Below are positions 34,433 through 54,707 of a stretch of DNA of 64,000 nucleotides, piece by piece. The notes below the pieces were generated by a model. The model made no database searches and had not been told where the DNA came from. It saw only the letters and a list, made by a program, of their open reading frames with translations. The stretch covers positions 992,001-1,056,000 of the forward strand of contig JANHCV010000012.1 of assembly GCA_025594325.1 (NCBI GenBank), read 5' to 3'. This DNA is from Blastocladiella emersonii ATCC 22665. Taxonomy: Eukaryota > Fungi > Blastocladiomycota. A program made the position numbers and the translations under genes. The stretch's first letter is position 1. Each line of letters opens with the position of its first letter.

Positions 34433-36087
34433 ATGGTCAGTGATGCACTCCTCAATGAATCAACCCCGCCGCCGCCCTGCCGCGCGCGCGCACACCGATG
34501 AACGCTGGTGACTGACGATCCCGCCCGCTCTTTCGAATCCCCCCGCCCGCCGTGTATGAACTGGTGGCCACGCTCACCCATCCGCGCCCCCTCGCTGCTT
34601 CCGCCCCGTGCGCGCGTCTCCAAAAACCATGCCAATGACCCTCCTCACGCTCCGCTGTGTGGTGTGCACCTTCGACGTGCGCTCGCTGATCTGGTCGCTC
34701 TGCGCGATGTGCCTGCCGTGTCCCGCTGTTTGGACGGATGTCGCGTGATTCGCGCTCCTTGTGGCTGTCCTGTCCCTGCAGGCTCCTAAGGGCAAGAAGA
34801 TCGCCGCCGCTCCCTTCAAGGCCGGCGCCAAGGCCGCCGCCGCGACCAAGGACGCTCGCATTGAGAAGACCCCCCGCAACTTCTCGATCGGTACGCCTCC
34901 GTGCATCTCTCTCCCCTTTTTCTTCGTGTCCCGGTGACTCGGGTGCGGGAACTGGGGCGGGGTCGCTGGACGGTCGAAAGTCGATGAGTGCAGCTTTCCG
35001 TCGCGCCATTTCAAGCGGGCGGCCGCTCCGGCGGCTGCTCGTGGCCGACGTAGGCATGGTTTTTGTGATGGCAGGCGGCTCTCGTACCGTCCCTTGCGGG
35101 CGGTGCGTGTACCGTCGCGCCAGTTGACGCCGGGTGGCGAGGTGGCGGCGCTCGAGCCCGTCCTCCGTTTGCGTGCTGCCGCTGCTCGTAAATGATCCGC
35201 GCGCTCGCACCCGCCGGTCGGCCCGTGTGTCCGCCACCTCGTTCCCCGCCATCCGGCGTCGCATCTCGTTTGACCTGCCTTTTGAACTGCTGCACTTTCG
35301 ACTCTCGACTCTGTCCACCACCCCGCCCGGTTCTCGCACTCGCACCGTGTCGCCCTCAACCGCCCGCCCTCCCGAACCGTCGTGCTCACCGCCCGACCCC
35401 CGCTCAGGCAACGACATCCAGCCCAAGCGCGACCTGACCCGCTTCGTCCGCTGGCCCGAGTACGTCCGCCTCCAGCGCCAGCGCGCCATCCTCAAGCGCC
35501 GCCTCAAGGTCCCCCCGGCCATCAACCAGTTCTCGCGCGTCGCCGACAAGAACGTCGCCACCCAGCTGTTCCGCCTCCTGAACAAGATCCGCCCCGAGAC
35601 CAAGCAGGAGAAGAAGGCCCGTCTTTCGGCCGCCGCTGAGGCCAAGGCCGCTGGCAAGACCGTCGAGGCTGGCAAGAAGCCCGTCATCGTCAAGTACGGT
35701 ATCAACCACGTGACGGCCCTCATCGAGGCCAAGAAGGCCAAGCTCGTCGTCATCGCCCACGACGTCGACCCCATCGAGCTCGTCGTCTTCCTCCCGGCCC
35801 TGTGCCGCAAGATGGGCGTGCCCTACGTCATCGTCAAGGGCAAGGCCCGCCTCGGGACGGTCGTCCACAAGAAGACGGCCACCGCCCTCGCCATTGTTGA
35901 CGTCAAGGAGGCCGACAAGAACGAGCTCGCTGCCCTCGTCACGGTCGCCAAGGCCAACTTCAACGACAAGTCGGACGAGATCCGCAAGACCTGGGGCGGC
36001 GGTATCATGGGCAAGAAGTCCAACGACAAGACCCTCAAGCGCGAGAAGGCCCGCGCCAAGGAGGTCTCGACCGCTCACCTCGCCTAA
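34433..36087 (+). CDS. RPL7A: 60S ribosomal protein eL8 (L7a / yeast L8)
   Basis: Exon 1 is the ATG only (34433-35), intron 34436-34781, exon 34782-34890, intron 34891-35407, exon 35408-36087. Contains [23 protein letters not shown] and [25 protein letters not shown]. Confidence 0.95.
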
Positions 36088-36410
36088 GCGTGTGTGCTGC
36101 TGTTGTCGTCGCTCATCGCTTCGCGACCGGGTCCGGGTGTGGTGTGTTCACTCAATACATTGCTCCTTGACTCTCCAAAGCACTCTTGTACAGTTTTCTC
36201 TAGATACACAATGTTTTAGTCCCCACTTTTTCTCGCTGCCTACTTCGCCCCGGTGGCTCGGGCTCACTTCTTTCGTCGGCTTGGCGGCTCGCTTGCACAG
36301 CCGCACAGCTTGCGGGTCGATGCTGAGCTCGGGCCTCGTCCATCTCTTCTCTCTCGCAGGCCACGAACGTCTCCATGTAACTCGACCCTCGGCTCGCCAG
36401 CGTCTCCATC

Positions 36411-37104
36411 ATGTCCAACTTCCACCGCCCACGCATCTGCACGCACACGGCTTCGGCCGCAGCGGCAGCGGCACCGTACCACGCTAACCTGCGTTATGAG
36501 CCCATGGCGGCGTACAAACTGACGCTCGCTCGTTCGCACTTCGAGGCGACAATGGAAGACTACGAGCCGTACCACGCTCGCGCGCACTATGAAAGACTAC
36601 GAGCCGTACTACGCTCGCGCGCACTATGAGCCCGCGATGGCCAACGAGCCGCCCCTCGCTCGCTTGCGCTTCGTGTCCGCGATGGCATACGAGCCGCACC
36701 ACGCTCACACTCACTACGAGCTCACGCTGGCCATCCACCCACACATCGCTCACTCGCACTTTGGGACCTGTCCAGATGCAGCTGCGCTGTTCATGGCCTT
36801 GCAGCACCACTTGCGCACTTGTCGCGGGTGCTACGGCCACGCGGAAATGGTGTTCCGCGGCACTGCGGCCATGGCCATGGCCACGGTCATGAGCGTGCGA
36901 TGGCCGGCGCGGTCCGCGGCAACGCGCGTCCCCGCTGCTCCGCAGCGGAAGAAACAGCAGCAGTGGCGCGAGAAGACTTACGACCCGAACCTGCCGTTCG
37001 CATGCGTACCGCAATGTCCGTTGCGGTCCGCGAGCTGGCGAGGCCTCCGTATTCACCAGGCATCCTGCAAGCGCTCTCGCCTTCACTTTGGCAAGCCGTT
37101 CTGA
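36411..37104 (+). pseudogene. YEP-repeat ORF with C-terminal C2HC zinc finger, frameshifted by a 37-bp tandem duplication
   Basis: The duplicated unit starts at 36556 and 36593. Removing one unit fuses ORFs 36411-36629 and 36589-37104. The C-terminus reads CVPQCPLRSASWRGLRIHQASC. Confidence 0.45.
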
Positions 37105-37360
37105 TCAAATGGGCGGCGCTTCAGCCGTGTTCCTGGGTCAACTGCGTCACGGTGTCGCCATCAAGCGGGTCCTGTGTGATGGATGGTGCGAGTAGACTCT
37201 CTTGACTGGACCGCGCGTAATTCGCCGGTAAGAGTGAGGCAAGAACGCGAAGGCGAGCGTGAGGAAGCGCGTTGCGCCACAGCGTGACGGCCAACGCTGG
37301 CAGGAGGTGAAAGTGTGGCGGCCCGCCGAAACGCTTTCTCGCTCCTCGCCCACGAAGCTC

Positions 37361-38491
37361 ATGGAACCAATGATGGAAACCAGCTCAAACGACTTGATGC
37401 AACCCGTCCCAATCGAGCAGCTCAGCTTGGACGACGAGCCAGCGGCACCGCCGTCGCCGTCGACGCTCGGGCCCGCCCCGATCCGCGAGCGCCCGCTGCG
37501 GCTCCTGGACCTCCCGCAAGATGTTCTCTCTGCGATCTTTCATACTGTCATCGAAACCGCGGGACCCCGGACTTTCACCTCGTTGATGTTCTCCCACTCT
37601 TCACTGTTCCGCTTGGCCCAATTCGACCCGGCCGTGTATTTGCCGCGCTTACATCTTGTCGTCTCGCCGCCTTATGATCGCTTACAAGCATTCAAGAAGC
37701 GCGGAGTGGTATTACCCAACAGCCTTCTATTCCTACTCGTATCATTGCACAGGTCGACCCACCAAGGCGCGTCCGCGCGTTCCTGCCCGCCGATCCAAGT
37801 GCTTCTCACGCTCCTGCCACGCCCTGCTCGTTGCACATGGACGGATGACGACCTCTTACCAATGATGTCTACCTTTCAAACCGCAGCCCAAAATGTCTTC
37901 AAGGTAATTGAGCCAAACCCCGTCACGCTTGATTTCTCACTCCTTGAAAACAGCCTTTTGGTTCGTTTCGTGCTGTTACACCTGCTGGATGGAGACCCCT
38001 TGGAGCCTACTGCTCCGGATCTTCGTATTATTCACCGGGCCCCAGAGTTCTCGAGTGGAAACGGGTTCGACTGGCCTACTGGGCGCAAATACTCGACGCC
38101 GTTTGTAACCGTGTGTTCCAGCTGCGAACAGCGAGCCGTACTTGGTGATCGACCACGCTGGCTGTGCTTGGCCTGTTCCCCTGATGCCCGCCAAAAACTA
38201 CCCGTTGGGGGTAGCGACTCACCTCCTCCGCCGCCAACTCGGACGTGCTGGACTTGCCGCAAGCTCACGACGGACTGTTCACCACTCTCCGACGTCTGCC
38301 AGCGCGAGGGCCATGTCTCGCCCAAATCGTTTCGGGTAGACCTCTGACCCGCTTGCGCACCTCGCATCCATCGAATCGGCTGCGACTGGTGCTTCTACGC
38401 AAACGGCGGCGATCCGGTGTGGCTCCCCCCACTCGATGCTCCCGCTGATCTCGGGTTGACCCCCGGCGAGGTCAATGCTGCTCAAGAATAG
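37361..38491 (+). pseudogene. F-box-like plus CxxC-rich protein, left outer palindrome copy (in-frame TGA at 38345)
   Basis: LRLLDLPQDVLSAIFHTV resembles an F-box. CSSC, CLAC, CWTC, *PAC and CDWC follow. It is colinear, at 376 codons, with the copy at 52424-53554. Confidence 0.7.
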
Positions 38492-39045
38492 CTCAAGAAC
38501 GGCGTGCCGGGTACGAGAGTCGCTGAGGCCTCACGCCAAAATCGACTCGTTCCGTGAAGCTTGATCGACTTCGCAATACATTTTGTTTCTGTGCCGCTCC
38601 CTCTGTGATACGCGCAGCCGATCTACTCACCTGAACTCCGGGTGATGATTCGTCGTCCGTCCGTTGACTTGACGCGTTGCGCCACGCACGTGTGCATGGT
38701 CAACGCGCTCTTCAGCTCGCTTCGGCCGACCCACGGCGGGGCAACCCCAGTCGAAGAACAGCTGTTGTACCAAGAACTAATGCTTGGCTCGGACGTTCCG
38801 TCACGACGTGACGCAACGCGTCCGCATACTTCGCCACCCCCTTGCCACGCGGGAAACAGAACGGGAAAGTAGAAGTTCAGAAGATAGCTCCGCCACGATT
38901 GAATTCTCATCAAACACGCTGTATTGAGCCCTCGAAATACGCTGCGGCTTGACTATCCCCTTAACGTACGACGACCGCTTGAGTGAAAAACGCTGCACTT
39001 TTAATCTCAAGGGGCACTCAGCGAGCAGCTGTAGTGGCATCAACT

Positions 39046-40786
39046 TAATGATCTGCGGCAAGTGAAGCGACGGGCCACATTGAACCCCCGCCGTTCGCGT
39101 AGAAGCACCATTCTCAGCCGATTCGGCGAATTTGAGGAGCGCACGAAGAGCAAAGGTCAACACGGAAGGATGCGGGCGATGTATGACCTTCGCGTTGGCA
39201 AACTTCAGCGAGCGGGACGATGCCCGTGGGCAGCCTGCAGTAGATCCAGCACATCCGTGGTGGGTTGCTGCCATCGTTCGCGCGGCAGACTAACCTTGAT
39301 GTGCTTCGAGCGAGTATGCCAAACAACGCCACAAGTGCTTCTCGCTGCGTTCCCTCTATCGCAACGTGGTGGCAACAGCACGCCCGCTCAGAGGCGGACC
39401 AAGTGTGACTGACTGGCACGCGAAGGCCCCGTTGGCCGCTCCGCTCTTCGGACGGCTACTCGACGTGCCGCTGCGGCTCGACCACGCGAACCACATTCGA
39501 TCGCTCGCTCTCGCAGTCTGGATTTCATGGACATGCCCTGTCAGTTGCTGGACAACTGCGATGGGAAGATTCGCATCAGCTGGCGCGAGTGGCCAGTGCT
39601 CGCCCTCGACTATTATGCGGCGAATCGTCACGCCCTTAAGTGACGAGCAGGGCAAGACGGCGGCGAGGTTCACTGGGCGCGAGGCCGACTCGTCCAACAG
39701 CGGCTCAAAGACACACGATATGTCAAGCCCGCCCGCCCGCGCATCCACGAAGCGGATCAGGTGTCGCAGCACGTCGTACTCGACCAGCGGGGTGTGAGCG
39801 GCGGCAGACGGGTGCTCGCGCGGAGACGAAGACGGAGCCTCGTGCCAGATCCGTCGTCCGTCTCAGCGAGCGCATCGCAGCTGTCGTGTTCGCGAAGTGC
39901 GCGGCGGGCGGGTCAAGTACCGGCCAGAAGAATCAGCGAGAATTCCCAATCCGTGAACTCTTAGAGGACGTCAAAGAGAGCCCACACGCGTGACGCAGTT
40001 GGCTCGGTCACCAAGCGCTTCCCCCTCGTCGTACGTAACACGCCAAAAGATTGGAGAAGCTTAGCGGTCCGCTTCACGTCACGAGCAGACCGTTGGTTTC
40101 TGAACCTCACGGGCTTCGGTTGAAGACGTGTGAGAAGTTCGAGTGGCGCGTCGAGCGAGTGAGGCACACGCAATTCTGGGCGCAAACACCGCTACTAGCA
40201 CCTAGCTGTGCGCTCAACAGCAGCGCGCTCGCAGTTACGTTCAAATGCGCCCATCGGACCCAAGTGAGTTGGAAGCGCAACCAGGCCGTGACCTTGGCGC
40301 GGCCGCGTGCGCGCGCATCCGCGAGTCCGGGAGCAGCATAAACAACGACGCAAACGTGGCCTCGAGGTCGCCGGCGTGCGTACAGGAGAGGAGACGCGGC
40401 AGCGAAACCCGGCGAGCGAGCGGTGCAGCGGGAAGGTGCCCACGGAAAGTTGGATCGCGGCGACAAGGAGATCGGACCAAGTTGCGCCGCGAGCAATCAA
40501 GGGCGGCGCGAAGAGGGAGGGGTACAGACGAGAGCGGCGAGAGCAGCTGACGGATCGAACGCAGGGCGCCCGTGAAGCGTAGATCGATGTACCAGACGAG
40601 GAGCATCTGCAGGTGAGGCACGAGGCTCGTAGCAACAGGTTGCGGCCAACGCCTGGGAGCAGCCGGCGTCGTCGACGGCGAGCGTCCGTCGCAGCAGAGC
40701 GGTCATGCGCGAGGTGCGACGACGCAGCGGAGCGGCAGCTCGAGCGCCGTGTTCATAGGGTGGTATTCATATTGCATAAGCTTCAT
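39046..40786 (-). pseudogene. Decayed distant paralog of the F-box-like/CxxC gene (left inner copy)
   Basis: Mirror of 50132-51872. The C-terminus CWIYCRLPTGIVPLAEVCQREGHTSPASFRVDLCSSCAPQIRRIG*EWCFYANGG aligns with the outer copies. The 5' extent is uncertain. Confidence 0.55.
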
Positions 40787-43014
40787 GGGTAGATTGCAGC
40801 GGCTGGAGGTCCCAATCAGAGCTAGCGTCCCAGTCAGAGCTAGCGAGAGAGAGAGCGCGAGAGTCGCCGAGGGGAGGGCGCGCTGGAGGAACTCGCGCTC
40901 GTGCAACCAACCCCGCGCCCCGGACCACAGAGCGCCCCGTCAGCGCCGTGATGCACTCGCTCGTGTGTGTTGGAGAGCAGCCGCTCGTTGAACAAGGCCG
41001 GTCGTGAACGGGATCGGCACTCGCGAACGCTGCAGGGGGCGTCGCGGGCTTCGCGACGTCACCACCGTGGCGAAGCCATGCGATTGGCCTTGCTGAAAGG
41101 ACGGGCGTGCATCAACATGAGCCCCGGGCTGCCCTACGCGTCCTCAGTTGACCAAGATCGTGGTGATCGAGCCGGTCCCGAGCTTGAGGCGAGGCTCGCG
41201 GCGGAGCTCGAAGGGCGACCGGCTTGGTCGTCAAGAGCACTATCAAGCAGGTCCCGACGAGAGTCCGGCGAGGCCCGTGAGGGAGCTTCACCAAGTCGAG
41301 CAAGACCCGTTGACGGTCAAGGTCCGCAAGCGAGGGTGGTGGAGACGACCGGGACGCGCGATCACGTCGAGGCCGGCGGCCGGGCCAGCCAACGGGGACG
41401 GCTCGTTTGCAAGCCGCCGCGATGTGGCGCATCGCGTGGGCCGGCAACGGCAGGCGGGCCGTGTGCGCGAACACGGCGCGTTCCCATGGGAGCGGAAGCG
41501 CGAATTGCGAGGCGCGCGGCGCGAGGAGGCGTGCGAGGGGCGACTGCGTGGTGGGAACGCGGCCCCCCGAACCCCGAACAACGGCACGGGCAACACACCC
41601 CAAGGCCCGAGCGGTAGCGACCGATGCGGTTTGCGGCGCCGCTCGTCCGTCCACTCTCTCTGTCCTCTGAGGTCCCCGATCCGAGAAGCCATGGAGCAAA
41701 GTGTGAGAGTCGACTCGTGGACGTGCGTGCGCGCTACCCCGACGTCGGAAGCTTCGGCAGACGCGTTGCACGGGATGGGCCGACGATGGAGGAGGAAGGG
41801 CGGATGGATCGAGCGGCTGTGGCATGGAGAAGGAAGATTGGTCGAGAAGCGCCGGACCGGGCAAGGTCAAGTCCCGAGGCCGATCCGCTGTACGCGCGCC
41901 GGGGAGCGGTTTCCTCCGTGTCCGAGGTCGCGTCCTGCAACAAGCGGATTGGGCTTGGATGCCCTTGGGCCAAAGAGCCGGAGGACCTGCTCGAGGTGCC
42001 CCAGCACACGGACGGCCAGCTCCGGAGCGCGGTGAACGGTCGGGTTCGATGCCGAGCGCCTGCCGCGCGAACCGAGGTCGCGTCCAGGTCGGCCGACGTG
42101 GGCGACCCCGGTGCACGCAGTCGCAGGACCAGTAGCGCATACATGATTGCTTCATACGAGACGATTGCAGCGTCGCGCGTGGAGTACGTGTCGTGGGAGG
42201 CAATCTTGAGTGGAACTGGCGGTACGTCCTGCCAAACTTGATGGTGTGACGCGCCAGCCCCGTCCCTGCCGCTACGCCTCGATCGTGGCCGGGTGCCTCG
42301 GCGCGCTACCGCGGGCATGGGCCCGAGAAGGCGTCATGGTCACGGGGGATCAGGCACATGAGAATTGTCTCTCAAGTGGCGCGGCGAGGGCGGCAGCCGG
42401 AGGGAGACGGTGGCGCGACGCGTCGCGGGCAAGCTTGTTCACCGCCGACGCGTCGTGCTCCCGCTCTCTCTCTCCGCGATATTGCAACGCTATCCCGATC
42501 CTCCTCCGATCCGACCTCTCCGACTCTTCGCATCCACAAGGTCCACTACCGGGCAGTACTACCAGACACCGCTCGGCGCGGTGACGGACACGCAGGTACA
42601 TGCGCGGCTGGGTCGTGACGGTCGTGCACTCACGGTACGCGTCCGGATCCGTGTAGATTCGCGTAGCACACGACGCAAGGGCTTCTGCAAGACGATCGGT
42701 GCGCGGTCAAGAGCTACTCGGGCGCATCAAGGTCGAGAGACGCACAAGCGGTGACAACGTCGCGCGTCCAGCTGCTGCTCATCGGGGCTGTAAGCAACGA
42801 CTGCAAGATCGAGGAGATCAACAAGTCCAAGCTCTAGACGCCCGCCCGCCCGCGTTCCCGCGTTCCCGCGCGTCGTCGTCCAGCTGCTGCTCGCCAAGGC
42901 CAAGACCATGACCGAGGAGCTCGAGGAGTTCAAGCTCGTGGTGGTCGTGTCGTTGTCGTGCTGCGCGTGGTCGTGGTCAAGCGCAACGTGTTCCTCCCCG
43001 TTCCTCGCGTCCCT

Positions 43015-43700
43015 CGACTCGACGTGCTCGCGTTCCTCGACTCGACTCGACTCGACTCGAATCGAATCGACGTGTTCCCGTTCCTCGAGTCCCTTGACGT
43101 GCTTCCGTTCCAACAAGATGATCCTCGACTACGGGACTACGACCGGTACTCGCTCGCTCCCGCCTGCCCACCCGCGCCCTTGTCTCTCGACTCTCCGGCG
43201 CGCGTCCATCACCAACCACAGCACGCAGCAGCAGCAGCACATCGACCTCGACTCGACCGACCTCTTCTCCTTCCTCGTCGACCTGACCAGCCAAATGCAG
43301 GTCGCGGGTCGCACACGCGCGCGCGCGTCGGTCGTCGGTCAACTCGGTCGTCGGTCGGGTCGCGCGGGTCGCAGGCCGCCGCCGCATTCGCCATGGAACG
43401 TGTGCGCTCTCGCCTCGCTGCTGCTGCAGCACGTGTCTTCTTCTTCTTCGAGCTCGACGAGTGGTGCTGACCCGAAAACTCCTCCCTACCCCCGCGCCCG
43501 ACGACGTGTACGCTCTCCCTCGCACTACAGCCTGCTCCGCCTGCTCCGCCTGCTCCGCCTGCTACGGTACTCGGGTCCTCGACTCGATCCTCGACGTGTT
43601 CCTGTTCCTCGACGCCTCGACGCCTCGACTCCCCAACGTGTTTCTCGCTCGGCCACGATCCTCGACGCCTCGACGACGTGTTTCTCGCTCGACACCACGA
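43015..43700. repeat. TCGA-rich low-complexity block: (CTCGA)n, 9-bp CCTGCTCCG tandem, ~40-bp tandem unit (mirrored at ~47,220-47,900)
   Basis: Read directly from the sequence. Confidence 0.8.
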
Positions 43701-45413
43701 TGACACGCACGACTGCTCGCTCCCGCGATCGTCCGTCATCTCCCTCATCCACGGGTACGCGTCGCGTCGTGCGTGCTCCGCGCAGTGGGCTCACCACCAC
43801 CCTCACCTCGCGTAGTCCATCCGTTCGTCCCACGGGCGGCTCTTCTCTGTCTTCCATCGGTGCTGTGCCGCGCGTTCTGCCGCGCGTCCGGAGCACTTCC
43901 ACATCACCTCCCTTCACCCTTACGTCCATCCACTTATCACCCCGCCTCACTTCATGCAATGGATCATACCTGTCGCCTGGATGTATTTACCAAGTCACAC
44001 AAGCTGATGCCACGCACGGCTTCGTGCTCCCTTCAAAGGTGCCGTCCATTCCGCGCCGCATTAAGAGCCGGCACCGCTTGAGCTTCCGGAGAGCAGCGAG
44101 TATGACGTGACAGTGAACCGTGAGCATCTTCTCTATACACAGCGTGAGCGATACGTTTGAGCCAAGGAACAGCACGGACACGATGTCAGCTCTGTTGGAC
44201 TTGGGCGTGCGGCAAGACTCCTCCGGGAATGCTTTCACACTAATGCCTGTTCTCCAGTAACTCACAGCAGTTACATGTTCATTATCAAGGACTGTTGCTT
44301 GCGCGTGTCTTTCTTGGCTGTACCCGTGCTTGAAGACGTAGATTACGAGGCGGATGCGCGAGATCATAACCCCCTTGACACGCGTCAGGACCTTGAGGCA
44401 GGGCGGTCGCCAGGGTCACTGACTGTTGCAAGCGAGATCACAGGCAGCTTGCCTCGATCGGTCGAGTCCTTGCGCGTTTTGCAGACAGTGCAGTCTAAAC
44501 GTGAATTTCGGGGGGGGGGGGGTGCTCAGAGTCGCGAGGCATGATTGAGGGCGCGGGCGCGTACCACCACCGCTCAAAGCGATTCTCGTACTGCGACCCG
44601 ATGCGGCGTCTGCGCTTGGCGGACATGATTTCACCGTTAGCCTCGTCATTGTCACCCAGTCCTATACAGCCGGCACGTCAAAAGTCAACCGGCTCGGGCG
44701 TCACGCAATCGTTGGCTTTGGAAACTGCGATCAGCTTGCTTAGCAACGTATTAACGCCGTCGCGGGGATTGTTCATAGTATCCTGGAGGCCACGCTACCC
44801 GCAAGCGAATTCTGAAATGGCCGACATTCAGCATATCTTGCCGGTTTGCTCCAATGCGCCTCTCACGCCTGAGATGAAAATTGCTCAACTTTACCGCGAC
44901 ATGATTCTTGCCGCTCTCCTGTGGCCCAATGAATAGTTTCCGTACTACACTAACATCATCATTGACGTGGACCAGATCAACGCGAGGCGTGATGCTGGGA
45001 ATGGATTTGAGCGACATGTTCATCAATAACACCGACTGAGGTGAGCGAGTGTGCGGCCAGCTCACACGATCGAGAGTACGCGGCTCGCCCTCGCGACGCG
45101 CCACTCATGTGCTGTGGCGCAATCTGAAACGCGGTCCGATCACTGACTTGATCATTGTCGTGTAGCGCGCTTTGAGTCGGTCGGCGTGTTCCGAAACCCG
45201 AATGACAAGGACTAGGTCGTCGCGCAGTACCTACAATTATACTTGATCCACCTAGACGCTTCGCGTTTGGTTTTCAATCGAGGGCTAAAGCATGCGCCAC
45301 GTTGGGCGCTTGTGCCGTGCAGGCGCGCTTCCGCTCGAGCCGTGAGTAGGCGCCCGTTGAACGAGTCTTTTACATCACTCATACTGCAGTACTCGACGGA
45401 GGGTTCGGAGATC

Positions 45414-45523
45414 GGCGCGTCGCAGCACGGCGCGTCGCAGCACAACGGTCGCAGCTCAACGCGTCGCATCACAGCGCGCCGCAGCACAGACCGCCGCAGC
45501 ACAGCGCGCCGCAGCACGGCGCG
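45414..45523. repeat. Degenerate 15-bp tandem array (consensus RGCGCGYCGCAGCAC) x ~7
   Basis: Units start at 45414, 45429, 45444, 45458, 45473, 45488 and 45503. Confidence 0.85.
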
Positions 45524-45559
45524 ATGCGCGCGCATCAATGGAGGCCGGTGCGGCTAGTC

Positions 45560-46345
45560 GCTCGCGTTGGGTGACGACAATTGTAGTGCCTTGCAAGGCA
45601 CCGACAAGAGTCACCGGCGCGACATCAACAATTGCGTTGCAGCGCGGGCACCAAGCACGCTCTCGCACGGCGCTCGAGGAGATGGCCGTCGCAGCGCAGG
45701 GCGCGGCTCCAGGAGCCTGCAAAGGTGGCTGTACATCCGCTTCAACCATGCAGCGAGCGGCGCATCCACGACGGAGGCCACGATGTGCTTGATACGGTTT
45801 GAGCCGCTGAGCTGCTCTGTGAGCGAGCGAGCTGGACATGCCAGCGCGGAGGCTGACGCCGATCTCGTCTGGCGACTACGGTCAGAACTGGTGCCAGTGG
45901 GCGCGGGTCGGTAGCTGGCCGGCGAGCAAGGGAAGCTGGAAGCTCATGAGCGACAGAGAGTGCGCCTCGGGTCTGTGTTGAATTCGCAGCCGCGCCGAGA
46001 CACCGTTTAGGGCGTGCCCTGGTCCGCGCGGATGGCGGCCGCGACTCCCAGCGGTAAGTGCGCGGCGGCGCCCTGAATGGCGAGCGCGTCGGCCTCCTTT
46101 TTGGCCGAGTTCGCAGCGTGGCCGCGAACCCACTCGAAGCTGACCTGGAGCTCGCGAGCCGCGATGATCCAGCAGAGCACGGCCCACTCGAGCGAACATA
46201 TTGCGCGGACCCACACCCTTGGAGAAGGCAAGAGCATCTTGACGGCCGAGTCGACAACTCTCTTGTTGTCGAGCGTGAGGGTGCGCTTGACACCGCGGCG
46301 ATACGCCGCATCGGGTCGCAGTACGAGAATCGCTTTGAGCGGTGG
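45560..46345 (-). mobile_element. Retroelement relic: RNase H C-terminal half and a downstream CPRC motif
   Basis: LKAILVL...TLTLDNKRVVD...LQVSFEWVRGHAANSAKKEADALAIQG matches the RNase H WVxGH...EEADxLA signature. WCPRC lies downstream. No RT domain was seen. Confidence 0.65.
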
Positions 46346-49300
46346 TGGTACGCGCCCGCGCCCTCAATCATGCCTCGCGACTCTGAGCACCCCCCCCCCC
46401 CCCCCCCCGAAATTCACGTTTAGACTGCACTGTCTGCAAAACGCGCAAGGACTCGACCGATCGAGGCAAGCTGCCTGTGATCTCGCTTGCAACAGTCAGT
46501 GACCCTGGCGACCGCCCTGCCTCAAGGTCCTGACGCGTGTCAAGGGGGTTATGATCTCGCGCATCCGCCTCGTAATCTACGTCTTCAAGCACGGGTACAG
46601 CCAAGAAAGACACGCGCAAGCAACAGTCCTTGATAATGAACATGTAACTGCTGTGAGTTACTGGAGAACAGGCATTAGTGTGAAAGCATTCCCGGAGGAG
46701 TCTTGCCGCACGCCCAAGTCCAACAGAGCTGACATCGTGTCCGTGCTGTTCCTTGGCTCAAACGTATCGCTCACGCTGTGTATAGAGAAGATGCTCACGG
46801 TTCACTGTCACGTCATACTCGCTGCTCTCCGGAAGCTCAAGCGGTGCCGGCTCTTAATGCGGCGCGGAATGGACGGCACCTTTGAAGGGAGCACGAAGCC
46901 GTGCGTGGCATCAGCTTGTGTGACTTGGTAAATACATCCAGGCGACAGGTATGATCCATTGCATGAAGTGAGGCGGGGTGATAAGTGGATGGACGTAAGG
47001 GTGAAGGGAGGTGATGTGGAAGTGCTCCGGACGCGCGGCAGAACGCGCGGCACAGCACCGATGGAAGACAGAGAAGAGCCGCCCGTGGGACGAACGGATG
47101 GACTACGCGAGGTGAGGGTGGTGGTGAGCCCACTGCGCGGAGCACGCACGACGCGACGCGTACCCGTGGATGAGGGAGATGACGGACGATCGCGGGAGCG
47201 AGCAGTCGTGCGTGTCATCGTGGTGTCGAGCGAGAAACACGTCGTCGAGGCGTCGAGGATCGTGGCCGAGCGAGAAACACGTTGGGGAGTCGAGGCGTCG
47301 AGGCGTCGAGGAACAGGAACACGTCGAGGATCGAGTCGAGGACCCGAGTACCGTAGCAGGCGGAGCAGGCGGAGCAGGCGGAGCAGGCTGTAGTGCGAGG
47401 GAGAGCGTACACGTCGTCGGGCGCGGGGGTAGGGAGGAGTTTTCGGGTCAGCACCACTCGTCGAGCTCGAAGAAGAAGAAGACACGTGCTGCAGCAGCAG
47501 CGAGGCGAGAGCGCACACGTTCCATGGCGAATGCGGCGGCGGCCTGCGACCCGCGCGACCCGACCGACGACCGAGTTGACCGACGACCGACGCGCGCGCG
47601 CGTGTGCGACCCGCGACCTGCATTTGGCTGGTCAGGTCGACGAGGAAGGAGAAGAGGTCGGTCGAGTCGAGGTCGATGTGCTGCTGCTGCTGCGTGCTGT
47701 GGTTGGTGATGGACGCGCGCCGGAGAGTCGAGAGACAAGGGCGCGGGTGGGCAGGCGGGAGCGAGCGAGTACCGGTCGTAGTCCCGTAGTCGAGGATCAT
47801 CTTGTTGGAACGGAAGCACGTCAAGGGACTCGAGGAACGGGAACACGTCGATTCGATTCGAGTCGAGTCGAGTCGAGTCGAGGAACGCGAGCACGTCGAG
47901 TCGAGGGACGCGAGGAACGGGGAGGAACACGTTGCGCTTGACCACGACCACGCGCAGCACGACAACGACACGACCACCACGAGCTTGAACTCCTCGAGCT
48001 CCTCGGTCATGGTCTTGGCCTTGGCGAGCAGCAGCTGGACGACGACGCGCGGGAACGCGGGAACGCGGGCGGGCGGGCGTCTAGAGCTTGGACTTGTTGA
48101 TCTCCTCGATCTTGCAGTCGTTGCTTACAGCCCCGATGAGCAGCAGCTGGACGCGCGACGTTGTCACCGCTTGTGCGTCTCTCGACCTTGATGCGCCCGA
48201 GTAGCTCTTGACCGCGCACCGATCGTCTTGCAGAAGCCCTTGCGTCGTGTGCTACGCGAATCTACACGGATCCGGACGCGTACCGTGAGTGCACGACCGT
48301 CACGACCCAGCCGCGCATGTACCTGCGTGTCCGTCACCGCGCCGAGCGGTGTCTGGTAGTACTGCCCGGTAGTGGACCTTGTGGATGCGAAGAGTCGGAG
48401 AGGTCGGATCGGAGGAGGATCGGGATAGCGTTGCAATATCGCGGAGAGAGAGAGCGGGAGCACGACGCGTCGGCGGTGAACAAGCTTGCCCGCGACGCGT
48501 CGCGCCACCGTCTCCCTCCGGCTGCCGCCCTCGCCGCGCCACTTGAGAGACAATTCTCATGTGCCTGATCCCCCGTGACCATGACGCCTTCTCGGGCCCA
48601 TGCCCGCGGTAGCGCGCCGAGGCACCCGGCCACGATCGAGGCGTAGCGGCAGGGACGGGGCTGGCGCGTCACACCATCAAGTTTGGCAGGACGTACCGCC
48701 AGTTCCACTCAAGATTGCCTCCCACGACACGTACTCCACGCGCGACGCTGCAATCGTCTCGTATGAAGCAATCATGTATGCGCTACTGGTCCTGCGACTG
48801 CGTGCACCGGGGTCGCCCACGTCGGCCGACCTGGACGCGACCTCGGTTCGCGCGGCAGGCGCTCGGCATCGAACCCGACCGTTCACCGCGCTCCGGAGCT
48901 GGCCGTCCGTGTGCTGGGGCACCTCGAGCAGGTCCTCCGGCTCTTTGGCCCAAGGGCATCCAAGCCCAATCCGCTTGTTGCAGGACGCGACCTCGGACAC
49001 GGAGGAAACCGCTCCCCGGCGCGCGTACAGCGGATCGGCCTCGGGACTTGACCTTGCCCGGTCCGGCGCTTCTCGACCAATCTTCCTTCTCCATGCCACA
49101 GCCGCTCGATCCATCCGCCCTTCCTCCTCCATCGTCGGCCCATCCCGTGCAACGCGTCTGCCGAAGCTTCCGACGTCGGGGTAGCGCGCACGCACGTCCA
49201 CGAGTCGACTCTCACACTTTGCTCCATGGCTTCTCGGATCGGGGACCTCAGAGGACAGAGAGAGTGGACGGACGAGCGGCGCCGCAAACCGCATCGGTCG

Positions 49301-51881
49301 CTACCGCTCGGGCCTTGGGGTGTGTTGCCCGTGCCGTTGTTCGGGGTTCGGGGGGCCGCGTTCCCACCACGCAGTCGCCCCTCGCACGCCTCCTCGCGCC
49401 GCGCGCCTCGCAATTCGCGCTTCCGCTCCCATGGGAACGCGCCGTGTTCGCGCACACGGCCCGCCTGCCGTTGCCGGCCCACGCGATGCGCCACATCGCG
49501 GCGGCTTGCAAACGAGCCGTCCCCGTTGGCTGGCCCGGCCGCCGGCCTCGACGTGATCGCGCGTCCCGGTCGTCTCCACCACCCTCGCTTGCGGACCTTG
49601 ACCGTCAACGGGTCTTGCTCGACTTGGTGAAGCTCCCTCACGGGCCTCGCCGGACTCTCGTCGGGACCTGCTTGATAGTGCTCTTGACGACCAAGCCGGT
49701 CGCCCTTCGAGCTCCGCCGCGAGCCTCGCCTCAAGCTCGGGACCGGCTCGATCACCACGATCTTGGTCAACTGAGGACGCGTAGGGCAGCCCGGGGCTCA
49801 TGTTGATGCACGCCCGTCCTTTCAGCAAGGCCAATCGCATGGCTTCGCCACGGTGGTGACGTCGCGAAGCCCGCGACGCCCCCTGCAGCGTTCGCGAGTG
49901 CCGATCCCGTTCACGACCGGCCTTGTTCAACGAGCGGCTGCTCTCCAACACACACGAGCGAGTGCATCACGGCGCTGACGGGGCGCTCTGTGGTCCGGGG
50001 CGCGGGGTTGGTTGCACGAGCGCGAGTTCCTCCAGCGCGCCCTCCCCTCGGCGACTCTCGCGCTCTCTCTCTCGCTAGCTCTGACTGGGACGCTAGCTCT
50101 GATTGGGACCTCCAGCCGCTGCAATCTACCCATGAAGCTTATGCAATATGAATACCACCCTATGAACACGGCGCTCGAGCTGCCGCTCCGCTGCGTCGTC
50201 GCACCTCGCGCATGACCGCTCTGCTGCGACGGACGCTCGCCGTCGACGACGCCGGCTGCTCCCAGGCGTTGGCCGCAACCTGTTGCTACGAGCCTCGTGC
50301 CTCACCTGCAGATGCTCCTCGTCTGGTACATCGATCTACGCTTCACGGGCGCCCTGCGTTCGATCCGTCAGCTGCTCTCGCCGCTCTCGTCTGTACCCCT
50401 CCCTCTTCGCGCCGCCCTTGATTGCTCGCGGCGCAACTTGGTCCGATCTCCTTGTCGCCGCGATCCAACTTTCCGTGGGCACCTTCCCGCTGCACCGCTC
50501 GCTCGCCGGGTTTCGCTGCCGCGTCTCCTCTCCTGTACGCACGCCGGCGACCTCGAGGCCACGTTTGCGTCGTTGTTTATGCTGCTCCCGGACTCGCGGA
50601 TGCGCGCGCACGCGGCCGCGCCAAGGTCACGGCCTGGTTGCGCTTCCAACTCACTTGGGTCCGATGGGCGCATTTGAACGTAACTGCGAGCGCGCTGCTG
50701 TTGAGCGCACAGCTAGGTGCTAGTAGCGGTGTTTGCGCCCAGAATTGCGTGTGCCTCACTCGCTCGACGCGCCACTCGAACTTCTCACACGTCTTCAACC
50801 GAAGCCCGTGAGGTTCAGAAACCAACGGTCTGCTCGTGACGTGAAGCGGACCGCTAAGCTTCTCCAATCTTTTGGCGTGTTACGTACGACGAGGGGGAAG
50901 CGCTTGGTGACCGAGCCAACTGCGTCACGCGTGTGGGCTCTCTTTGACGTCCTCTAAGAGTTCACGGATTGGGAATTCTCGCTGATTCTTCTGGCCGGTA
51001 CTTGACCCGCCCGCCGCGCACTTCGCGAACACGACAGCTGCGATGCGCTCGCTGAGACGGACGACGGATCTGGCACGAGGCTCCGTCTTCGTCTCCGCGC
51101 GAGCACCCGTCTGCCGCCGCTCACACCCCGCTGGTCGAGTACGACGTGCTGCGACACCTGATCCGCTTCGTGGATGCGCGGGCGGGCGGGCTTGACATAT
51201 CGTGTGTCTTTGAGCCGCTGTTGGACGAGTCGGCCTCGCGCCCAGTGAACCTCGCCGCCGTCTTGCCCTGCTCGTCACTTAAGGGCGTGACGATTCGCCG
51301 CATAATAGTCGAGGGCGAGCACTGGCCACTCGCGCCAGCTGATGCGAATCTTCCCATCGCAGTTGTCCAGCAACTGACAGGGCATGTCCATGAAATCCAG
51401 ACTGCGAGAGCGAGCGATCGAATGTGGTTCGCGTGGTCGAGCCGCAGCGGCACGTCGAGTAGCCGTCCGAAGAGCGGAGCGGCCAACGGGGCCTTCGCGT
51501 GCCAGTCAGTCACACTTGGTCCGCCTCTGAGCGGGCGTGCTGTTGCCACCACGTTGCGATAGAGGGAACGCAGCGAGAAGCACTTGTGGCGTTGTTTGGC
51601 ATACTCGCTCGAAGCACATCAAGGTTAGTCTGCCGCGCGAACGATGGCAGCAACCCACCACGGATGTGCTGGATCTACTGCAGGCTGCCCACGGGCATCG
51701 TCCCGCTCGCTGAAGTTTGCCAACGCGAAGGTCATACATCGCCCGCATCCTTCCGTGTTGACCTTTGCTCTTCGTGCGCTCCTCAAATTCGCCGAATCGG
51801 CTGAGAATGGTGCTTCTACGCGAACGGCGGGGGTTCAATGTGGCCCGTCGCTTCACTTGCCGCAGATCATTAAGTTGATGC
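46303..51881 (-). repeat. Right inner arm of the large inverted repeat (5,579 bp)
   Basis: Reverse complement of 39037-44609. The spacer is 44610-46302 (1,693 bp). Confidence 0.95.
50132..51872 (+). pseudogene. Decayed distant paralog of the F-box-like/CxxC gene (right inner copy)
   Basis: Start MKLMQYEYHPMNTALELPL (tentative), several frame breaks, CxxC-rich end with TGA at 51802-51804 replacing a Cys. Confidence 0.55.
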
Positions 51882-52423
51882 GACTACATGTGCGCGCCGA
51901 GTACTGCCCAGGATAAACGCGTAGTTTTTCTCGCTCGGGCAGGCGCCGCGACTCGAGGCTGATCGGCGAGCCTCAGCGTATTTCGATTGTCTCAATACAG
52001 AGTGACTGATGAGAATCTGATCGCGGCGGATCTCTCTCCTCTGAACTTGGACACGCTCGCGTCTTGTCATCCACGCTGCAAGGGGGTGGAATAGCCTGTG
52101 GACGGGTTGTGTCACGTTGTGATGAAACGTGCGAGCTCGACATCATTTCTATTAATGACAGTTGCGCCGCGACTTGGGATGCATAGCTGGAGGTCGGGCT
52201 AGGCGAGATGAAAAGCGCGCTGACCATGCGCGCGTGAGTGGCGCAACGCGTCGATCGAATCAGGGAACGAAAAAACTTTGCCCAGCACTTGCGATTGTGA
52301 ATCAGCTGTGTGTATTGGGGTAGTGGAACAAGAGAGGTACATCACGACATTAATCAAGCTGTACAGAACGAGTCGGTTTCGACCTGAAGCCTCAGCGACT
52401 ACCGCGCCCGGCACCTCGTTGAG

Positions 52424-53554
52424 CTATTCTTGAGCAGCATTGACCTCGCCGGGGGTCAACTCAATATCAGCGGGAGCATCGAGTGGGGGGAGCCACACCG
52501 GATCGCCGCCGTTTGCGTAAAAGCACCAGTCGCAGCCGATCCGCCGAATCCGCGGCGCGCAAGCGGGGCAAAGGTCAACTTCAAACGACTCGGGCGAGCA
52601 GTGTCCTTCGCTTGGGCAAACCTCGGCGAGCGGCAAACAGTCCGTGGTGAGCTTGCGGCAGACCCAACACGTCTCATGTTCCGGTTGAGGCGGGTTGTCA
52701 TCATCACCGACGGATTGATCTTGATGAGAGTCGGGCGAGCAGGCCGGACAAAACCAGGTGGGTCTATCACCAAGGACGGCCCGCTGGTTGGAAGCGGAAC
52801 ACACGGTGACCAACTGCTTCGAGAGCCCAGGGCCAAGCGGCCAGGCAAAATCGGTTCCACTCGCGTAATCAGGAGCTCGGTGAATGATGCGAATGTCTAG
52901 ACCAGCAGATGTGGCGAAAGTAGCTCGATTCGCAAGATGGAAGACGAGAAAACCGATCAGACTCGCATGTTCAAGAAGTGAGCAGTCAAGCGAGACAGGG
53001 ATTGGTTTGATTATCGCATAGACCATAGCCGCAGCATGTTGGTAAACCTGAAGTGCTTGGCTGACCTCCGGCTTCCGGCTTTGAGCAGGGTGCGCCAGCA
53101 GCGTGAGATGGACTTGAATCGGCGGGTAAGACTGGTCTGGCGGTCCGAGTTTGTACAGCCCGACCATGCATGCAAGAACAATGAGAAGACTCCGGGGCAG
53201 TCGTGTCACACGCTTTGGCGCCGGTGTAGGCGGCTCGTAGGGCGGCGATATGACAAGATGGATGTGCGGCGAGTATACAGCCGGGTCGGTTTTGATCAAG
53301 TTGAGCAACGACGTGTGGCAGTAAGCCAACGATACGAAGGTTCGCGTCCCGGAGTACTCAAGGACAGCGTGAAGAATCGCCGCAAGAACGATTTGCGGAA
53401 GGTCCAAGAGCTGAAGCGAGCGCTCGTGGATCGGGGCGGTCGTGAGCGCCGATGGCGGCGGCGGCGGTGCCGCTGGCTCATCGTCCAGTCTGAGCTGCTC
53501 GATTGGGACGGGTTGCATCAAGTCGTGTGAGTCAGTTTCCATGATTGAATCCAT
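52424..53554 (-). CDS. F-box-like plus CxxC-rich protein, right outer palindrome copy (intact, 376 aa)
   Basis: LQLLDLPQIVLAAILHAV, then CPAC, CWVC, CPAC and CDWC. The frame is open. Confidence 0.72.
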   Translation of the reverse strand: MDSIMETDSHDLMQPVPIEQLRLDDEPAAPPPPPSALTTAPIHERSLQLLDLPQIVLAAILHAVLEYSGTRTFVSLAYCHTSLLNLIKTDPAVYSPHIHLVISPPYEPPTPAPKRVTRLPRSLLIVLACMVGLYKLGPPDQSYPPIQVHLTLLAHPAQSRKPEVSQALQVYQHAAAMVYAIIKPIPVSLDCSLLEHASLIGFLVFHLANRATFATSAGLDIRIIHRAPDYASGTDFAWPLGPGLSKQLVTVCSASNQRAVLGDRPTWFCPACSPDSHQDQSVGDDDNPPQPEHETCWVCRKLTTDCLPLAEVCPSEGHCSPESFEVDLCPACAPRIRRIGCDWCFYANGGDPVWLPPLDAPADIELTPGEVNAAQE

Positions 53555-54707
53555 GAGCTTCGTCTGTGCGCAGTGGGAACACGTTGCGACCGTCTCAGCA
53601 GTTTTTGCCGCGCGGCTGCAGCCATCACGCTGTGGCGCAACGCGCTTCGCCTCACTCGTCGAGACGCACTTGATGGGCCATGTTGGCGACCATCGAATTC
53701 TCGTGAAATCAACTGCCCGACTTGACTGCGCGGGGGAAGTCAGCATTCCCGCTCCACCAGCGTCCAGCCTGCTTCACCTCACTGATTACAACTTCGAACG
53801 AACGGCCAACTCGCATAGCCATTCGAAATCTCCGCCATCAGTCGCAATCAAGGTCCTGATGGCACGCAAGCGACTCGTCGAACTCGCCCAGCTCGCTGCT
53901 TTATCCGCGAGTGTGGCGAAGACGTCTTTCTTGGGGCAGCGGCAGTTCGCGGGCACGATGTGCGCTCAAACCGCTGAATCTCACCATTCATTCACATCAC
54001 GCCAACTCAAGGTTTCCTCTCCTGTGCGGCCGGAACGATCCCTCTGCAAATTCGACGAGACGAGCTTATCCAACGTGGATACGGCGAGACCTCTAGTCCT
54101 GATCTCGACGTTTGCGCGAGGACCGTCACGGGGTGCGGTCACCCGCCCATAACGCACGGCGAAAAGGACGACAGAACGTGACGGCTACGTCAAGCAGGCT
54201 GGACGCGCAGGGGATCGGCCAAAGTAGCAACACAGGCTCTCGCGAGCTCAGAGTTCGAGAAAATGTCCTCCACCTTAGTGGTCCGACCGCCGTGAAGCTC
54301 GATCTTCGGGCTGAGGGCGGGCAGACCTGAGGGCAGGGTGTCGTTATGCAAGACACTTCCCACGAGCGAAATCCGATTATCCCAGTAAATGGGAAACATC
54401 AAGCCCCGTTGGATAGATTTAGAGTGTCCCGCGCTTGGTCAGGCTGTGGGTGAGGGACTCAGCTGAAGCTTTATGCTTTCGGTAGCGCGCGGCGGCGGGG
54501 CGCGAGCGGGCGGGCGGTGGCCGCGGTGTGGCGGAGCGGTGCGTCGAGGTCAGGTGACGGCGTGCTGCCCCGTTGCCGCCGATTTGCGCCACACGGTCCC
54601 ACGCGCGCTTCACACGCGCTCCCTCTCCTCTCCCCTCCCCTGCTTCCCGGACACGAATCAATCCATGCATCAGACCACGTAACGCTAACCGCAAAAATAC
54701 AACAACC

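Follow-up and report, generated by a model that had tools for sequence, protein, structure and literature searches.

The 64,000-nucleotide stretch of Blastocladiella emersonii ATCC 22665 analysed here (the window: positions 992,001 to 1,056,000 of contig JANHCV010000012.1, assembly GCA_025594325.1) contains a palindrome built in two tiers, in which a pair of practically identical inner arms of about 5.6 kb lies inside a pair of clearly diverged outer arms. It is probable, at roughly 0.7, that this structure began as an old inverted duplication and that recently, in one event or in a short series of events, the inner 5.6 kb of one arm was copied onto the other. The inner arms carry no substitution in 5573 nt, whereas the outer arms, which continue them without interruption and in the same register, stand at a Kimura two-parameter distance (K2P) of 0.36. 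Identity so far above the age of the duplication is the mark by which gene-converting palindromes are recognized.

The inner arms were located at 39037-44609 (5573 nt) and 46303-51881 (5579 nt). They are perfect reverse complements of each other except in one homopolymer, a result obtained alike from a repeat search, from a global alignment and from a BLAST comparison in which the left half was set against the reverse-complemented right half. The sole difference is a run of 13 G on the forward strand at 44510-44522, whose partner in the right arm is a run of 19 C at 46390-46408. Between the two arms lies a unique spacer of 1693 nt (44610-46302). In the outward direction the first mismatch is met at 39036/51882, and beyond it the homology goes on with its register unchanged through the left outer arm (37259-39036, + strand) and the right outer arm (51882-53655, - strand), the coordinate sums staying at 90912-90918. 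The whole mirror-image duplication measures 16.4 kb, with original arms of about 7.4 kb each and an axis at 45456, and this axis has an internal position on the contig, about 418 kb from the nearer end. Past about 37241/53671 no further homology between the two sides was detected by tblastx or sensitive blastn, and an old duplication reaching beyond these points was rejected because both searches stop there. An earlier note on this DNA, made from the sequence letters, had proposed the same arm coordinates with a lone G13/C19 difference, an abrupt edge at 39036/51882, about 1.8 kb of diverged homology outward to about 37260/53650, coordinate sums of 90912-90918 and start codons at 37361 and 53554; every coordinate that we checked was correct.

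Two observations were made at the margins of these arms. The G13 and C19 runs are placed 87 nt from the ends of the inner arms, and the Illumina-era contigs end before the run; the difference in length could be real instability, or it could be a homopolymer error of PacBio high-fidelity (HiFi) sequencing or of Pilon polishing. Just outside the left end of the old duplication, at 36552-36733, there are tandem repeats of 37 and 45 bp, and the right side has no counterpart of them.

The divergence of the outer arms has the features of ordinary ageing. Over 1751 aligned columns they are 71.4% identical, with 255 transitions, 245 transversions (a transition/transversion ratio of 1.04) and 29 indel events, and their 548 non-coding nt (about 68-71% identity) are diverged as much as the coding part. 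The coding part consists of two related genes, here called A (37361-38488, + strand, in the left outer arm) and A' (53554-52427, - strand, 376 amino acids, intact, in the right outer arm). Their products are 59% identical, the ratio of non-synonymous to synonymous substitution rates (dN/dS) is 0.39, and the third codon position is the most diverged, at 58.8% identity against 71.7% and 76.7% for the other two. On the strength of the K2P distance, the balanced substitution spectrum, the indels, the equal divergence of coding and non-coding parts, the codon-position pattern and the dN/dS value, the duplication is old and normally evolving, and both A and A' evolved as real genes after it took place.

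The change from this diverged tier to the identical one occurs as a step. Identity is 63.5% in the last 50 nt outside the edge and 64.1% in the last 100 nt, and across the outer arms it neither rises nor falls as the edge is approached (Spearman rho 0.00, p 0.93). Inside the edge, 0 substitutions in 5573 nt put the divergence at 5.4e-4 or less (95% bound), which is less than 0.15% of the outer distance. The register shift at the boundary is merely 6 nt, and no large heterology is found there.

Selection on protein coding cannot explain the identity of the inner arms because these arms lack the coding signature that the genes of the window have: their codon-position signal in guanine-plus-cytosine (GC) content is 0.035-0.09, compared with 0.19 for the genes. 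The earlier note had likewise held that coding selection does not account for the identity, and this measurement agrees with it. The inner arms are mostly decayed, non-coding and repeat-derived DNA. Much of their middle (41200-43600 in the left arm) is a dispersed repeat with short tandem arrays inside it, copies of which, 90-95% alike, occur elsewhere in the genome. Further inward, at 43990-44415 on the - strand (mirror copy at about 46503-46928 on the + strand), lies what remains of a DUF6570 domain (PF20209; E 2.8e-6; score 28.2 bits, gathering score 24.3), for which a feature-based atlas search was uninformative and added nothing. When 30 stop-free stretches from the arms and the spacer were scanned with Pfam, the only hits were the DUF6570 relic and an RNase H relic in the spacer; a transposase, a reverse transcriptase or a helicase was not among them, and Rfam and tRNA scans of the window gave nothing.

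Taken together, these data are best explained by recent copying between the arms of an old duplication. Since the inner and outer homology are contiguous and their register is the same, the event behind the identity of the inner arms must have ended at homologous positions in both arms, which points to templated, homology-guided copying and not to a fresh duplication with arbitrary breakpoints or to two insertions. The dispersed repeat differs by 5-10% from its other copies and is thus younger than the split of the outer arms; as it is nevertheless identical in both arms, the copying must have brought it from one arm to the other. A single recent long tract, or a small number of tracts, is favoured because the outer divergence is flat right up to the edge, and the single long tract is an inferred step, not an observed one. 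The history would then run as follows. An inverted segmental duplication, now old and with about 7.4 kb in each arm, would have been formed from a gene of an orphan family and the DNA downstream of it, and its two copies would have drifted to about 71% identity. Much later a non-reciprocal recombination, once or in a short series, would have replaced the inner 5.57 kb of one arm with the sequence of its sister, which served as the template for gap repair, for break-induced copying or for long-tract gene conversion; decayed, non-coding and repeat-derived sequence would have been taken along, and the tract would have ended at homologous positions in both arms. With arms that are now identical, the palindrome is open to renewed conversion and, at least in principle, its spacer could be inverted. 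Gene-conversion tracts of more than 9 kb have been documented in the primate palindrome P6 (PMC3723533), and in yeast pairing in single-stranded DNA is still possible for inverted repeats with as much as 25% divergence (PMC10164571). In the comparison with B. britannica the synteny breaks off before the palindrome is reached. The old duplication and the recent inner overwrite that the earlier note had put forward are supported here by the in-register homology, by the flat outer divergence, by the two-copy and variant-free arm and by the lack of transposon ends, the last two of which are described below.

Three points weigh against this reading. Recombination between arms that are only 71% identical should be rare. 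The longest perfect runs in the outer arms (54, 40 and 37 nt) are all situated away from the edge, and just 6 matching nt adjoin it. The reads, in addition, were compared on the left arm and its two borders only, with one 600-nt contig as the single-copy baseline.

The first two of these points lend some weight to continuous concerted evolution, in which frequent short conversions, like those in Y-chromosome palindromes, would have kept the inner arms alike from the time of the old duplication onward, the outer 1.8 kb having dropped out of the process early and the boundary not having moved since. The GC content of the inner arm is 63.8%, which is 5.8 points above the 58% of the outer arm and also above the 60.8% of the spacer, as GC-biased conversion would give; however, this difference is confounded by the differing sequence content, including the repeat relics. 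Continuous conversion that meets no barrier is expected to leave a graded, inward-retreating edge. The edge has no divergence gradient, which argues against the slow inward erosion of a continuously converted arm, and with a register shift of just 6 nt there is no large heterology that could pin the boundary. We therefore regard continuous conversion as a minority explanation, unlikely although it is the strongest of the rivals to recent overwriting.

The structure itself was compared with public sequencing data. Four public runs, here called X1 to X4, contain the sequence; all of them were made from the sample behind the assembly and are represented as contigs of k=31, and a second isolate was not found. 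The comparison covered 38750-44700, that is the left inner arm with both of its borders, and the right-hand junctions lie outside it. In X1 and X2 a 600-nt contig from the flank that holds gene A ends at 39066, which is 30 nt inside the arm, and a 2179-nt contig begins exactly at 39037. A k=31 graph behaves in this way at a true branch, here one produced by the base difference at 39036, and PacBio-era and Illumina-era runs both break exactly at 39036/39037. The depth of the flank contig and of the arm contig is 126 and 236 in X1 (1.9x) and 41 and 61 in X2 (1.5x), always with the one 600-nt flank contig as baseline, and the remaining unique parts of the arm have 1.6-2.1x the flank depth. The segment 39037-41215 is present exactly twice and not as a family. 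No variant letters were found in any run within 39037-41215 and 43624-44522. One contig of X3 spans the passage from flank to arm and one contig of X4 that from arm to spacer, and a contig of X1 stops at 44522, the thirteenth G of the run, as would be expected if two run lengths exist in the reads. The earlier note had named read depth over the arms as a check, and single-copy coverage or arm-specific polymorphisms collapsed by polishing as signs of an artefact; on the left side the depth is that of two copies, single-copy coverage was not seen, and the contigs hold no such polymorphisms over the two intervals just given.

The dispersed repeat at 41200-43600 gives a different picture in the same data, with depth of up to 700 in X1, variant contigs and loose ends. 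The variant contigs over 41221-41956 and 42504-43530, which are 90-95% alike, have about 2.3x the single-copy depth in X1, so that at least one other locus carries this repeat and is possibly itself duplicated.

These results bear directly on whether the palindrome could be an artefact of assembly or polishing, with one arm overwritten or a fold-back chimera formed, so that the true arms are different or single-copy. The assembly consists of 21 contigs and 34.27 Mb and was made from PacBio HiFi reads of 10.5 kb mean length with LJA, purge_dups and Pilon polishing (PMC9730499). The purging of duplicates and the polishing could each favour such an error, and the four runs, coming from the assembly's own sample, are not independent and were compared on the left side. 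On the other hand, the k-mer graph branches at 39036/39037 in two libraries, the arm has 1.5-1.9x depth without variant bubbles, and the contigs of X3 and X4 cross from flank A into the arm and from the arm into the spacer. Because the flanks are distinct and diverged, which a fold-back chimera cannot produce, and because the HiFi reads are on average twice as long as the 5.6-kb arm, a collapsed, overwritten or fold-back assembly error is unlikely, and the chance that we allow for it is very small.

An equally slight chance is given to a twofold insertion, in which a mobile or captured segment of 5.6 kb would have landed beside each of two old paralogues, in opposite orientations. The DUF6570 relic and the dispersed repeat within the arm count in favour of such an origin. 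When the arm ends were examined, however, neither terminal inverted repeats nor Helitron-type ends nor a target-site duplication was found there; the Pfam scans found no transposase, and 39037-41215 exists in two copies and not as the family that a mobile element would form. Two independent insertions at homologous positions flanking one spacer are, moreover, very unlikely. Least credible of all is a young palindrome of 7.4 kb that owes the divergence of its outer part to hypermutation or diversifying selection, for although the outer arms hold a fast-evolving orphan gene family, it is contradicted by the substitution spectrum (a transition/transversion ratio of about 1 with 29 indels), by the 548 non-coding nt that are equally diverged and by a dN/dS of 0.39, which indicates purifying selection.

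The spacer is asymmetric, and no residual inverted homology or symmetry was found within its 1693 nt. In the present-day sequence there is no short inverted repeat that frames it, as one might at a fold-back point. A tandem array of 7.3 copies of a 15-bp unit (84% matches) lies at 45415-45523 and straddles the axis at 45456. At 46067-46282 on the - strand there is a relic of the C-terminal two thirds of an RNase H domain of retroelement type (PF00075, E 1e-3, 19.7 bits, which is below the gathering score; PDB 4ibn, E 0.024, query residues 28-102), and its nearest feature clusters are all of the reverse transcriptase/RNase H kind, with scores of about 0.7 that serve as a lead only. About 550 nt separate the 15-bp array from this RNase H on the - strand, and the array may represent the 3' tail of the same retroelement relic. 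What can be detected of the RNase H domain is confined to the spacer, its end being 21 nt away from the right junction. We had considered that it might cross this junction and so give the direction of copying, and this was rejected, as the detectable homology ends at 46282; a helix-like motif at 46318-46342 inside the right arm is suggestive only. Crossover between the 5.6-kb identical arms could plausibly invert the spacer. The RNase H relic and the tandem array are its only contents; no recombinase was found in the palindrome, and no gene or promoter that would depend on the direction of the spacer was found in the spacer. Among the sequencing runs listed there was none of RNA. The palindrome is best read as a by-product and a substrate of DNA repair, with no sign of a function.

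The genes of the outer arms belong to a family of their own. Pfam domains were found in neither A nor A', and a word-index search for homologues with A' returned nothing. An exhaustive HMMER search with A' gave one true relative, P0002; two bacterial fn3 proteins that also came up are spurious, as they match a Pro-rich stretch. P0002 is encoded on contig 10 of the same assembly (JANHCV010000010.1), within a cluster of four family members (L001:10094-17861) that have 30-40% amino acid identity and among which two, separated by about 290 nt, stand tail-to-tail. Between the two contigs the C-terminal CxxC region is kept even at the nucleotide level, with up to 94% identity over 36 nt. A third member of the A/A' family is represented in the inner arms by a fragment, here called B (39072-39278, - strand; mirror copy at about 51640-51846, + strand), which codes for the C-terminal 70 or so amino acids, is 59% identical to A' at the amino acid level (tblastn, E 3e-23) and stands tail-to-tail with A; its N-terminal part was not found by tblastn. 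An inverted repeat of 190 nt (38234-38423 and 39074-39263, 71% identity, 650-nt gap) has fragment B as one half and the sequence for the C-terminal domain of A as the other. Within each arm of the large palindrome there is thus an older, decayed mini-palindrome. The family is an orphan one, restricted to the species, which expands locally and in part by inverted duplication.

Gene A has a TGA in frame at 38345-38347, at the place where A' has a Cys codon of the CxxC motif. The 140 nt after this TGA are the best-conserved stretch of the outer arms, with 82-92% nucleotide identity and perfect runs of 54 and 40 nt. The TGA could be a recent nonsense mutation, or it could be subject to read-through or recoding.

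Structures of this type are already known, and the present one is a particularly clean two-tier case in an early-diverging fungus. With the palindromes of the primate Y and X chromosomes, such as P6, it shares inverted arms around a unique spacer, identity above the age of the duplication and non-reciprocal copying from arm to arm in multi-kilobase tracts, with spacer inversion possible but rare (PMC3723533, PMC8327919). In contrast to them it is 10-100 times smaller and lies inside a fungal contig; decayed, non-coding DNA makes up most of its inner arms, where theirs hold preserved gene families, and its history can be read in one genome from the 100%/64% step, while theirs was inferred from species comparison. 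The likeness to sex-chromosome palindromes that the earlier note had drawn holds for the mechanism, and not for the preservation of genes as a function. A second parallel is offered by the maintained inverted repeats around pairs of paralogous genes in Caenorhabditis, which are autosomal, reach up to 100% identity that extends into intergenic DNA and have been ascribed to gene conversion; one pair of C. briggsae duplicates, 54% identical overall and 99% identical over one sub-segment, has the same two-tier pattern (PMC1803023). There, however, functional genes and promoters were homogenised in arms of about 2 kb at most, whereas here the interior is non-genic and the genes lie in the diverged tier (PMC1803023). 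Fold-back and inverted-repeat rearrangements in yeast offer a route by which widely spaced repeats pair in single-stranded DNA and prime copying, but they lead to dicentrics or terminal duplications, while in B. emersonii the chromosome is intact on both sides and the tract rejoins in register (PMC7467729, PMC10164571).

The step from 100% to 64% is a record of copying between arms that is preserved in one genome; it lies in DNA to which selection does not apply as an explanation, outside sex chromosomes and outside animals. It is a speculative and rather doubtful proposal that B. emersonii has a pathway unusually active in forming inverted duplications and in homogenising them again, even when they are about 30% diverged and non-coding. 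If that were true, palindromes would be a genome-wide architectural feature of an early-diverging fungus that its genome paper leaves unmentioned, the words "palindrom" and "inverted" being absent from its text (PMC9730499), and a distinctive regime of hairpin or double-strand-break processing would be possible. These data suggest that Blastocladiella could serve as a microbial system for the study of how palindromes are formed, homogenised and decayed.

For users of the assembly the data also flag an intact, probably unannotated gene and a species-specific family that expands by inverted duplication. No gene product on record matches A' (376 amino acids) or its 440-amino-acid extension, and A' is likely an unannotated gene; a 525-amino-acid open reading frame (ORF) of the window and the ORF of the arm are not on record either. 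In the public annotation the interval 36087-42908 has no gene call, which leaves gene A unannotated. The sole annotated gene in the stretch 36087-43227 starts at 42908 (+ strand), inside the dispersed repeat, and no homologues of its 400-amino-acid ORF were found. The loose ends of the X4 contigs have the sequence of a loxP-like adaptor and are technical in nature, not biological, X4 being probably a mate-pair library of the Cre-lox type. The comparison with the public annotation was made over 15663-43227 of the window, where the two sequences are base-for-base identical and where the neighbouring gene product of 2344 amino acids is H9P43_008801 (100%).

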